Below are positions 28,842 through 44,975 of a stretch of DNA of 64,000 nt, in pieces. The notes below the pieces were generated by a model. The model had not been told where the DNA came from. It saw only the letters and a program-made list of their open reading frames with translations, and ran no database searches. Numbering within the stretch: position 1 is the stretch's first letter; every line of letters begins with the position of its first letter. The translations under genes were made by a program, and so were the position numbers. Source of the DNA: Perna viridis (Eukaryota); contig CM074523.1 in the NCBI GenBank assembly GCA_037379345.1, positions 11,786,551 to 11,850,550 of the forward strand, read 5' to 3'.

Positions 28842-29833
28842 TTACAATGTAAGCTTTATGTTAAAAGATTCTAGAACTTCAGTAATTGGCGTAGCAATAC
28901 ACCCTCTCCGATCCGCATGAACGCCAATCAACATCCCTATGCATCCACTTTTTGGGTGAGTGGCATAAATGCATGCTCCAGAATCTCCAGGTTTAGAAGG
29001 GATATTTGTGATATGAAGTTGACCAAACATTCTTCTACTTGTCCTACAGACCATTTGTCTGTCTTCACAGCGTCGCAAGAAATGATCATGAATATGGACA
29101 TTGTTTATGATTGCTGAGTAATTTATTCTTGTTTGAAGACAGGTCGCTCTTCCAAGGATTGATTCATAAGATTCATTGCTGTTCTGTTCTATGTTAAAAT
29201 ATTCTGCAACTACATCACAAACGGCATTTTTAAAAATCGTGGAGGGGTCGATATGCTGGCAGATTTTATCAAATGTTTGAGAAATGTTTTGATTACTTGC
29301 AATGCCAACGACACCTTGTAAATTTTCAATCAATTGCACGACCATGTCTTTTATATTGTCCCTGACACAAGGAATACTACGAGATATGTATGATTCCAAG
29401 TTTTGACATAGCGTCTCCTTAAGCGTTCTATCATGATCAAAATCATTTCCACTTTGATTCTTTTGTCTTAAATATTCAGACACTACGTCACAAACTATGT
29501 TTTTGAAGGAAATAAAAGGATTATATTCTTTGCCAAGGGTATCAAAGATTGCAGCGATCTGTGAATTTGTTGGAGGATTTCCATTGTGTATGTAACGAAT
29601 TATTTGTTCTGCCGTCAACTTTATATCATTCTGCATTATATTCCAAAAGCTATCAGATATGTATTCTAAGAAAATTGTGTCAAAGTCTTGTCTTGGTTCT
29701 TTTAAATCGGAATCTTCTGACAACATCCCCGACACTGCTCCAACACAGATTGTTTTCACCGTAGGTTTAGGTTCTTGGTAACACAGTCTTTTGTAATCAA
29801 TACAACTGTCGTTTAAGTATGGTGACTTCATTC
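28842..29833 (-). CDS. Copy B last exon: C-terminal half of the protease with catalytic Ser and a duplicated insert
   Basis: PGDSGACIY (Ser codon 28980-28982), CIGMLIG and IATPITEVL, typical of a trypsin-fold C-terminus. Phase-1 acceptor at 29833 and stop at 28842. Confidence 0.88.
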
Positions 29834-32800
29834 CTGTAAAATAGACAAATATAAATATACTCGGGAGAAGACCCTTAATCTTATTATGAAAAATATTTAG
29901 CCATAAAAATATTGCTATTAGTCCAAAACAAAAGGTGTACTATTATTGTGAATTTTTAACTTTGTTTGAGGACACCATATATATTTTGTGGTTTCGAATA
30001 AAATAAATAAATAAATAAATCAAAACCAACGTTTAAAATGATCTTTCGTTCATTAACAAGAACATTTTCACCCATGACAATAGTTAGTTTTCCATATAGA
30101 TTGTAACAAATATATTGTTATCACAAAGGTGCATTTTTTTTTATTTCAATGCCTCTAATTGTTTTGAATTTCTGTATCTCAATAGTAAAAAAAAGATCCA
30201 CATTCTGCATCAGTTGGCTCAGATATTACATGCTGTTTACACGATTGTACTTATTGAAACATGAGAACTAGTTCGCAAATGTTAATTAATATATACATGT
30301 ATTTATAATCATATTAACTCATCAAAATTAGTCATTTTAAAACAAGTTGAGCCCCGACAGTATTTTAGTGGAATAATTCGACTATTAAACGTTTTATGCA
30401 TAAAAGAATCTCTACTATACGAACGAATGTACATATTTGAGACGTAAAAGTTGTATTGCTTTTTCCATCATTCGTTTGGTCTTTATTGAACAAATATCCG
30501 ATCTCATTGTAGGCGTACCCATCAGACCGTATACTGGGTCATAGAAAAGTGATACATAATCTTCAAAACATAGTCATTGAGTTATTACTGTGCATTATAC
30601 CTATGGGGCAAAAAGTACAATTTGTAGTATTGTAGGATCAAAGCAGATGATTGTTCGCAATCGTTCCTTTTCTATCTGCAACAACATCCAAAAAAAAAAA
30701 AACAGATTGTGCCAAAACGCAAACGTTGAGCATGCAAAGCAATGTGTAGCATTTTTATATTGACATGTAGTGAACAATTTATAACTGATAGTTTCCTGCA
30801 TAGATAATGTGTTGATATGAAGCTATAGTTAATTGTGTATGGTTTGTTTTGTATCCACTTTAAGTTTCAGGTTGTGGAATTACCTGAATAAACGACAATT
30901 ACATTTGATTGTAATATGCTTTTTTAAAAGTAAAAATGCCAGTCACGGATACAAAACACTATTTTTCATAATTTGAAACCACTTTTGTATGTTATTAAAA
31001 ATACATTATTCTTTATTTAGCATGGCTTGTTAAGTTTAATCTCTCTAAGTATCAAGCAGTACGTGAAACATGGTACGGAAAACCCCACCATGCGGAAGTT
31101 TAAATTGACTATTTGCACCATTAGAACCAAGGGAATGGGCATGTTTTTTTCCATATCACTTTGTTAAATTGAGTCATATTTTCATTGGAATGCACTAAAC
31201 AATGAACAATACAAAGGCAGATACCTCTGTCAAAAACCTCATTTATTAAACATTAAATTAAAACATTTCTGAGGAAATCCAATTACGCAGAGATCAAATA
31301 ATAGTCTTCTTAAATGGAGGATGCATCCATGAGAGAAATAATATTATCAGATCGTTGAGTTTTTGACATACAATGTATATAATGACGATTTTTACCATTT
31401 TGCCTGATTCCTACGCATCTGTTGTATCTTAATTGGTTCGTTGTTGTAACAAAATGTAGTCATTATGTAATTATTATCTTCTAAACGTAAATAGGTTATA
31501 TCTGTTGAGTGAACTTATCTTGCGTACTCTTTTTGATAGAAAAAAACTAGCTTATGAATGATTTCTACACTTACCAAGACGATGGAAATCGTACTTTGCA
31601 TCCAAATTACAGGTGTCAGAAACGTAGTCATTCGGATGAAACGTAGTAAGGTTTTCCTCCAACCTTACTACAGCTGCATCGACACTCGTTTTGTAATTAG
31701 AATCGGTCCTGAAGCAAACATCACGGATTTTTCCACTTCGAAACCGTACTTCCTTTTCCCCAAAAGTAAAAGGACATATGATATCAACAAACATATCCTC
31801 CAAGTGGTTGATACCCATATCAGGAAAAGCTAGCTTTTCTGTACTCAAAATTGCATGTGCACAAGTGAGATAGGTAGTATCTCCCATTATTTTCACAAAA
31901 CCACCTAGAGTACCTTTCATAGAGTCTCCTCCAACAGTACTGCCTACTTTGATATTAGCACATAATTCATGGCTACCTTCTATGACATCGACAGGAAGTC
32001 CCTCATAGTGACGTGGAAAGTGACTTTCTCCGACGGGAACGAAGCCTTTCAGTCGAGAATATAAATGCAGGCATCTCGTTTTCTCAATCGTCCATTCTTT
32101 TCGTGTTCCAAATCCCTTGGATTTGTAAGAGGATGGTGAAATCATAGTTAATTTTGAATGGCTATCAAAGAGTTTCTCAGCTGCCTTAGTATCTACACAA
32201 GTGTTAGATGGAAAATGAAGTTTTCCTTCATTTGATTGTATTTTGTCATGAATTGCCTCACTCTCTTTGCTTTTAATTGCAGAAACATGCTTAATTGAAA
32301 TCCCATGGAATGTGTTCATACTATCCGGAATTTTTCTGCTATTGGCATGCTCAACTATTACTCGAACATCAGAAGAACACATGGACTTTTGTGTTTCAAT
32401 TGCTGTACATTTGCATATGAATGCGGGCCAAATATCAACTAGATCTCTAAGAAAATCTTTGTTCATTCTGTAAAACTGTCTAGTTATAAACCATGCAATG
32501 ACTTTGCAACAATCTGTTGCGCCTTTGTCAATACTATGTTTAATTATTTGATGAAATAAGGTCGCATGGACTCTGTGGTCTACACTATAGAGAATAAACC
32601 GACAAAGCATTGCTTGTTTCATTTCCACAACAGATTTCAATAATTGATAAATGTCAAGGTTCGTAGATTTTATACAATCTATCACACTTCCAAAGAGAGA
32701 TATTAATTCAAATTCTTCTCCTTCAAAGTTCTGCAATGTTGACTGGATGTCAATCTCTACAAAGAGATATTTTTGATATGAATATGAAAGTGTAATTGCA

Positions 32801-44800: not shown

Positions 44801-44975
44801 CAGCATCTTTGTCCAGTAAAAGGGTTACAATTTTATCGTTCGCGTTCCATGCCTGGCAAGCAACATGTAATGGCGTTTGTCCAATATTATTACTCAATGA
44901 TGTATCCGCATTTTTGTCCAGTAAATATTTTACTTTGTTTATCTGTCCTTTACGACAGGCAATATGTAAAGGCAT
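28842..44975 (-). CDS. Copy B: spliced ankyrin-repeat / NAL1-like trypsin-fold serine protease gene (exons 41544-44975, 37891-37999, 31575-32756, 28842-29833); 3 frameshifts, either assembly errors or recent pseudogenisation; true 5' end uncertain
   Basis: Donors CATG|GTAAGA (41544), GAAG|GTAATT (37891) and CTTG|GTAAGT (31575). Acceptors ttttcag (37999), tttgtag (32756) and ttttacag (29833). Phases match (phase 1) if one A is removed from the A6 run in the small exon. Copy A has the same exon layout. Confidence 0.8.
31575..32756 (-). CDS. Copy B exon: helical region, NAL1-like pro-region and N-terminal half of the protease (catalytic His and Asp)
   Basis: Open 1182-nt exon containing LHLYSRLKGFVPVGESHFP..GLPVDVIEG, GSTVG..GTLGGFV, YLTCAH (His codon 31855-31857) and SVDAAVV (Asp codon 31678-31680). 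Confidence 0.88.
32888..35520 (-). mobile_element. Degenerate near-full-length Penelope-like retroelement with N-terminal GIY-YIG endonuclease followed by RT (Naiad-type domain order), inside a copy B intron
   Basis: Minus-strand order: KCSIKNCKTC, NLIYGLECNLC, REEYWIR..GTAIPYGCND (GIY-YIG), then SKGPKYREP, MGINCAPLLADLFL, FRYIDDVL, SYLDL and TKLYDKRD..F..VNFP..SAPAYGVFISQLIRYARAC, then a 3' UTR. Many stops and frameshifts. Confidence 0.88.
36320..36830 (+). mobile_element. CR1/L2-group LINE 3' end remnant
   Basis: VPRVRTTTHGAHPFRYGGAKLWNELSN..W.GSSC then stop, followed by a T-rich 3' UTR with an aaagctct..agagcttt hairpin. Confidence 0.65.
37891..37999 (-). CDS. Copy B linker exon (DTLMTNPLVLHRYAIDCIVNAKQGRYTLHKEK...), not in the ORF track
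   Basis: AG/GT boundaries and clear homology to copy A exon 9567-9674. It is 109 nt versus 108 nt, with the extra base in a homopolymer. Confidence 0.8.
39830..40235 (-). mobile_element. Penelope-like 3' fragment in a copy B intron
   Basis: Similar to about 32900-33385 with deletions. Absent at the paralogous site in copy A (about 10510). Confidence 0.82.
41544..44975 (-). CDS. Copy B ankyrin exon, about 34 repeats of 33 aa (99 nt)
   Basis: ORFs 43512-44975, 41870-43504 and 41491-41910 give repeated DxxGQTPLHHACxxxNDKIVTLLLDKDADISLC. Frameshifts at about 43537 (2-nt loss) and about 41895 (extra A in a run). The exon ends ...NAVH-G at a GTAAGA donor. Confidence 0.93.

Follow-up and report, generated by a model that had tools for sequence, protein, structure and literature searches.

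The rice protein NARROW LEAF 1 (NAL1), an intracellular serine protease, has until now been investigated as a gene of plant yield. The NAL1 hexamer is needed to order the catalytic His loop, and the enzyme combines an ATP-binding domain with a hexameric cage (PMC12012508). Trypsin-like effectors are also employed by conflict systems of bacteria (PMC8195603, PMC10907252), and conflict architectures of immunity and cell death expand in bivalves (PMC8195603). Here we describe a locus in a 64,000-nt stretch of the Perna viridis genome (contig CM074523.1; hereafter the window, with positions counted from its first letter) in which arrays of ankyrin (ANK) repeats precede exons for a predicted, divergent NAL1-like protease. 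We consider it probable that the window contains a pair of old tandem paralogs from a family expanded in bivalves, that an intact ANK-protease fusion was ancestral, and that the locus is now decaying, copy A being a pseudogene and copy B having kept its protease exons behind an ANK part that is out of frame.

Gene structure of the two copies

The window is AT-rich (~33% guanine plus cytosine, GC), contains zero N and shows eukaryotic gene structure. Among public read sets, near-identical DNA was found only in SRR26215656 and ERZ13706909. Both gene copies lie on the minus strand, head to tail, with copy B at 28842-44975 and copy A at ~3199-13061; the features below are on this strand unless stated otherwise. 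In a comparison of the two copies the exons appear as islands of similarity separated by otherwise unalignable introns, and the splice sites occupy identical positions. The ancestral gene probably had four coding exons, namely an ANK array with a linker, a 108-nt mini exon with phase 1 at both ends, an exon for an N-terminal module plus the first protease barrel, and an exon for the second barrel.

The ANK identity of the array is given by Pfam matches to Ank and Ank_2 (E values down to 1e-183) and by a 33-residue spacing, with ~33 repeats in copy B. At the DNA level the copy B array has a 99-nt period (41982-44925; 29.6 copies, 87% matches), and its length and homogeneity are as expected from recent unequal exchange. 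What an earlier note on this DNA had read as one ANK exon comprises three open reading frames (ORFs) in three frames, separated by two breaks. The first ORF (43512-44975; 487 residues, ~15 repeats, frame 0) starts at the first ATG, at 44975; break 1, near 43530-43550, falls inside one of the repeats and disrupts their register, and a stop follows at 43512. The second (41870-43504; 544 residues, ~16 repeats) is in frame +1 relative to the first and leads into break 2 (41890-41900), an interruption within an A-run where the last ANK repeats begin. The third (41544-41910) is opened by an ATG at 41901, encodes the last ANK repeats and continues through a non-ANK linker to a phase-1 donor, G/GTAAGA, at 41544/41543. 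A roughly 31-repeat array is in this way out of frame with the rest of the gene. Break 2 recurs base for base in an independent short-read contig (L003; ENA ERZ13706909), which elsewhere shows three substitutions and two intronic single-base insertions or deletions (indels) relative to the window; because it differs at these few other positions, the contig represents another haplotype, and break 2 is real and no assembly slip. A gene call in ENA (P0240) begins at ATG 41901, the start of the last ANK frame. On the opposite strand, two ORFs cross the array (43553-44992, plus strand, 479 residues; 42475-43440, plus strand, 321 residues); they are a by-product of a repeat that is free of stops on that strand and give no indication of genes.

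Downstream of the donor, a copy B mini exon of 109 nt (37891-37999), with AG/GT borders and a single open frame, stands out as a conserved island between long introns. Its entry phase is 1 and its exit phase 2; exon 3 requires phase 1, and a stop is reached within two codons. Skipping of the mini exon would preserve the frame, since the end of exon 1 and the start of exon 3 are both phase 1. The mini-exon peptide has no detectable homologue among 219 family proteins, and exact look-ups of window ORFs in the protein collection, including small ORFs that span the mini exon and break 1, returned zero matches. Exon 3 (31575-32756) is intact, with phase-1 acceptor and donor; it begins after ...TTTGTAG at 32756, ends at 31575 ahead of GTAAGT, and encodes a helical/beta N-terminal module and the first barrel with the LTCAH His and the SVDAA Asp. 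Exon 4 (28842-29833), which begins after ...TTTTACAG at 29833, encodes the second barrel with a ~190-residue helical insert and the GDSG motif and is intact to its stop codon. About 45 codons separate the exon 3 acceptor from the first in-frame ATG, and this stretch is conserved between the copies; an ATG-free, conserved start identifies exon 3 as an internal coding exon. The junction of exons 3 and 4 coincides with a junction in a Mytilus californianus RefSeq protein (P0005), and in Ostrea edulis the split between the two protease lobes is the same. The introns vary in size, intron 2 measuring ~5.1 kb in copy B vs ~2.7 kb in copy A; in copy B it contains ORFs of 98-161 residues with no Pfam match and a region of high GC skew (0.19) at 34001-36000.

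Much of the gene structure put forward in the earlier note is thus retained. The four-exon layout has canonical splice sites, and the GTAAGA donor ahead of the apparent ANK stop is present in both copies. The bridging exon is there, bordered by AG/GT and conserved, but in copy B it enters exon 3 out of frame; the proposal of phase-1 junctions shared by the two paralogs breaks down at 37891/32756, where copy B has 109 nt vs 108 nt in copy A. With an ANK part in three frames and three interruptions in all, copy B holds no intact fusion. As sequenced, it would be unable to produce a long fusion and could give at most a short-ANK or protease-only product.

This raises the question as to whether copy B might still be a working gene, its breaks being errors or rare alleles, or being bypassed by starting at ATG 41901 and skipping the mini exon in frame, so that an ANK-protease or short-ANK-protease is made. 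Such a gene would be in keeping with the intact exons 3 and 4 and their full triad, with a ratio of nonsynonymous to synonymous divergence (dN/dS) of ~0.25, with the position of two of the three disruptions in A-runs, with an ATG that opens the last ANK frame and is the start of the P0240 gene call, and with the protease-only relatives in Mytilus (P0005). However, break 2 is identical in the independent short-read haplotype, and over 1.2 kb the assembly agrees with an Illumina contig with zero homopolymer discrepancies. The stop at 43512 lies far upstream of the last junctions and would probably make the full transcript a target of nonsense-mediated decay, and a collection of 5.8 billion proteins contains no near-identical copy B protein. 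We therefore regard a working copy B as unlikely, and prefer the reading in which its ANK part has decayed while the protease exons were kept.

Copy A has decayed further. Its ANK array (11690-13061) consists of 13.6 units with a 99-nt period (76% matches, 3% indels); it contains an in-frame stop and is broken up into no fewer than four ORFs. The last ANK repeats and linker (11346-11719) end at the same G/GTAAGA donor and have an extra frame shift near 11400, and the mini exon (9567-9674) is 108 nt long with phase 1 at both ends. In exon 3 (5688-6869) translation stays in frame only as far as ...VGSQVG, and five stops lie across the His region. Exon 4 (3199-3929) is a 242-residue ORF with a shorter insert, in which RDSG replaces GDSG. 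The exon 3 break is also present in a Logan contig (L001; SRR26215656) that is 99% identical to copy A; relative to the window this contig has a 2-nt indel and an additional stop, so that different disabling alleles of copy A are segregating. Copy A is a dead pseudogene, its decay being independently confirmed. Neither copy keeps a continuous frame across all exons, and the tandem pair of the earlier note survives as two same-strand copies but without a working paralog.

Age of the pair

Between copies A and B, dN is 0.33 and dS 1.25 for exon 3, and dN is 0.45 and dS 1.93 for exon 4, a ratio of ~0.25 for both. The copies are old, and their protease exons have been under long purifying selection. 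The 5' end of the gene gives very different values. In the last ANK repeats (41545-41904 vs 11396-11710) dS is 0.125 and the ratio ~1.5, and over its first 450 nt intron 1 (41061-41509 vs 10714-11159) is 85% identical between the copies. The low dS of these repeats, together with the similar start of intron 1, suggests that gene conversion later affected the 5' part of these old paralogs.

Identity of the protease domain

For this part of the analysis, searches and folding took the protease exons of copy B one at a time, and the natural homologue P0005, which is ~37% identical to the window exons, served as the model for the full domain. The copy B motifs LTCAH, SVDAA and GDSG follow each other in the order His-Asp-Ser. 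When a profile of 19 family sequences was compared with 177,635 PDB sequences, NAL1 was the sole family matched, weakly (E 0.04). The match spans G..V....GTLG......FLT..H, with the catalytic His of NAL1, and GDSG, with its Ser (H234 and S385); the equivalence of the Asp to that of the NAL1 triad is taken from the family alignment alone. For the P0005 model (46-sequence alignment; predicted local distance difference test, pLDDT, 82), Foldseek against the PDB placed rice NAL1 as the first block (E 2e-8), followed by Streptomyces griseus protease B and alpha-lytic protease (template modelling score 0.64-0.70 on the target). The AlphaFold model of window exon 3 (59 sequences, pLDDT 81.5, predicted template modelling score 0.68) gave the same answer, all matches with E <=0.001 being NAL1 (best E 1e-4). 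Pfam matches in the 46 relatives are all weak and comprise Nal1_C (12 of 46), Peptidase_S64, the Ssy5 family (5 of 46), and Trypsin_2 (5 of 46); weak Peptidase_S64 matches also occur in 2 of 32 family members. The domain is predicted to be a divergent NAL1-like serine protease of the PA clan.

Neither a signal peptide nor an IVGG activation site is visible in the translations, and the N-terminus is not hydrophobic; the window protease would accordingly read as cytosolic and non-zymogen in character. A secreted S1A enzyme of the chymotrypsin type was considered and rejected, the signal peptide, the IVGG site and a Pfam Trypsin match all being absent. The triad motifs of copy B, the lack of signal peptide and IVGG site, and the NAL1-like trypsin fold had each been called in the earlier note, and all are borne out here, with rice NAL1 ranking first both by profile and by Foldseek on the predicted models, including that of window exon 3.

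The helical insert of barrel 2 (~190 residues, 28990-29650) holds an internal repeat, seen as two ...FKN.VCDVV.EY... segments. Copy A has a shorter version of it, and in certain Mytilus relatives (P0032) it is almost missing. This insert might be a regulatory lid.

The bivalve family and its partner modules

A whole-library profile search found 892 cluster representatives of the family, and the named homologues that were looked up are all from bivalves (Mytilus, Ostrea, Saccostrea, Tegillarca, Mercenaria). The clearest example of the fusion is O. edulis XP_048750991.2, where ANK repeats and the N-lobe of the protease lie within one uninterrupted ORF of 3006 nt (1001 codons), with the Ser-bearing lobe ~150 nt downstream. 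In Tegillarca granosa KAJ8304335.1 ANK repeats stand immediately before the protease region, and several single-ORF contig proteins have a short ANK stretch in the same position. The ANK-protease fusion is therefore a real architecture of the family, as the earlier note had proposed for this locus.

An alternative is that there is no fusion in the window, an ankyrin gene merely adjoining a separate protease gene downstream, with splice sites that coincide by chance. Many family members are without ANK repeats, the frames of copy B do not connect, and the junctions are predictions from the DNA itself, all of which would suit two separate genes. On the other hand, exon 3 starts at a phase-1 acceptor and the peptide ahead of its first ATG is conserved between the copies; the linker donor and the position of the mini exon are kept in both old paralogs, with the phase kept in copy A; and in O. 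edulis ANK and protease share a single ORF. We consider chance adjacency very improbable, and an ancestral fusion the better explanation.

The O. edulis gene model stops at the stop codon of the first ORF and omits the GDSG-lobe exon at 13151-13552 (L004, which is OX387711.1, 10001-13552). Since this exon is left out, the database entry gives a truncated protein under a wrong name, 'alpha-latrotoxin-Lg1a-like' being the automatic RefSeq one. This name is the one point in favour of a secreted or venom-type ankyrin toxin relative. It stems from the ANK repeats alone, however; the remainder of XP_048750991.2 is the NAL1-like protease region, and both a signal peptide and the latrotoxin-specific region are lacking. 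A toxin relative is hardly credible, and we keep to an intracellular ANK-protease family.

Other members carry an nSTAND3 NTPase, DED, HEPN_DZIP3, NHL, MORC-like S5 with zf-CW, HSP70-like, DUF4559 or fn3 modules, and protease-only relatives exist in Mytilus (P0005). None of the partner modules other than ANK is encoded in the window. One relative (P0227) is called 'CARD domain-containing' in UniRef, a name that Pfam did not bear out. No NTPase was matched by Pfam in the window ORFs, and tblastn of the N-termini of nSTAND3-, DED- and HSP70-bearing relatives against the window returned nothing. The earlier note had suggested a cytosolic sensor-protease without an NTPase domain, of an architecture not characterised in animals. 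The first part agrees with the predicted cytosolic character and with the absence of an NTPase match in the window, but does not extend to the family, members of which carry nSTAND3 elsewhere. As to the second, our literature searches found no paper that describes a bivalve ANK-NAL1-like protease family, but predicted proteins with this architecture, unnamed or wrongly named, are already present in databases.

Assessment of the locus

The locus is chiefly a record of birth-and-death turnover in the bivalve NAL1-like family. Several observations weigh against the overall interpretation and its parts. Pfam gave no match at E <=0.1 in the window protease exons, and no Trypsin match among them. 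Fold and motifs both place the domain with the NAL1-like PA-clan proteases, but the curated Nal1_C (PF25819) threshold is missed, the scores listed for relatives (21.8 and 19.2 bits) being below the 26.1-bit cut-off (best E among the 46, 5.8e-6). Proteolytic activity is predicted from sequence and models, and the splice junctions at the locus are likewise predictions from the DNA. Break 1 and the extra base of the mini exon come from the window assembly as the single dataset. Finally, the reading frames of copy B exons 3 and 4 are open throughout in spite of an AT-rich genome, as would suit a gene with some remaining use.

Repeats and other features of the window

Upstream of each copy lies a 1.2-kb segment (20920-22149 and 52678-53880) that is 93% identical between the two sites, well above the identity of the exons. 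Being more alike than the exons, it is a younger repeat or a conversion tract outside the old duplication. A dispersed repeat of 150-250 nt occurs at 32885-33135, 5122-5369, 26342-26521, 22498-22641, 39834-40042 and 62038-62185 (79-94% identity) and is probably an element resembling a short interspersed nuclear element (SINE) or a miniature inverted-repeat transposable element (MITE); the copy at 32885-33135 sits directly upstream of the copy B exon 3 acceptor. A further repeat in copy B intron 2 (33196-33831) recurs upstream of the copy A array (13433-14096), and repeated pieces upstream of the two arrays match each other (13057-13850 and 45418-46150). These intron 2 and array-upstream pieces are probably degraded transposable-element sequence. 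Just past the copy B stop codon there is a 28-nt minisatellite (28100-28246; 5.2 copies, 92% matches). Ten further window ORFs gave zero Pfam matches and an Rfam search of the window zero matches, and a sigma-70 promoter scan, a bacterial-type scan irrelevant to a eukaryote, found nothing above chance.

Possible function and significance

Members of the family are likely effector proteases of immunity or cell death. The ANK solenoid of an intact protein would recognise a ligand or partner, and the protease, having no zymogen activation peptide, would be switched on through assembly or a conformational change; the absence of both signal and activation peptides is what suggests this kind of activation. 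Once active, the protease would cut targets inside the cell as part of an immunity or cell-death pathway. Both the immune role and the sensor-protease mechanism are drawn from the partner domains, the published NAL1 structure and the trypsin-like effectors of bacteria.

A broader and tentative proposal, which we rate as possible rather than probable, is that bivalves possess a large, undescribed family of cytosolic NAL1/Ssy5-like proteases that serve as a swappable effector behind ANK, NHL, nSTAND3, DED, HEPN or MORC-like modules. These would be an animal counterpart of the trypsin-like bacterial conflict effectors, activated by assembly instead of zymogen cleavage, and copy B may supply a short-ANK or protease-only form. 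The divergent NAL1-like protease seen here has expanded to hundreds of bivalve clusters, and its death-fold, STAND, HEPN and repeat partners point to an uncharacterised, protease-based arm of intracellular immunity or cell death in invertebrates. The natural modular fusions also offer material for studying how a protease is switched.

Comparison with known systems

The closest described relative is rice NAL1 (PDB 7Y77, 8PMG, 8HAS), which is likewise an intracellular PA-clan double barrel with neither signal nor zymogen peptide. It shares G..V....GTLG...K......FLT..H and GDSG with the bivalve family and is the top match by both structure and PDB sequence. Identity is only ~11-18%, however, between a plant and an animal protein, and the bivalve family differs in being fused to ANK and other modules and in the large helical insert of barrel 2. 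The ATP-binding domain and the hexameric cage are features of NAL1, the bivalve family having been compared with it by fold and motifs. Yeast Ssy5 (S64) is also an intracellular signalling endoprotease with a chymotrypsin fold and a large N-terminal region, to which the Pfam link is weak; its SPS-sensor context and prodomain autoprocessing are features of Ssy5, whereas the bivalve likeness stems from those weak matches. S. griseus protease B and alpha-lytic protease resemble the bivalve domain in core fold, but are secreted, have pro-regions and disulfides, and are without N-terminal modules. In bacterial STAND/ternary conflict systems (Kaur et al., PMC8195603; PMC10907252), trypsin-like effectors are modular and combine with death-like adaptors, repeats and STAND NTPases. 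The nSTAND3, DED, HEPN and ANK partners in bivalves appear to parallel these by architecture, although here the fusions are made within single, intron-bearing eukaryotic genes. The same layout is present in two proteins from annotated bivalve genomes, O. edulis XP_048750991.2 and Tegillarca KAJ8304335.1, which share the order of ANK repeats and NAL1-like protease with copy B at ~23-29% identity; unlike copy B, O. edulis has no intron separating ANK from protease.

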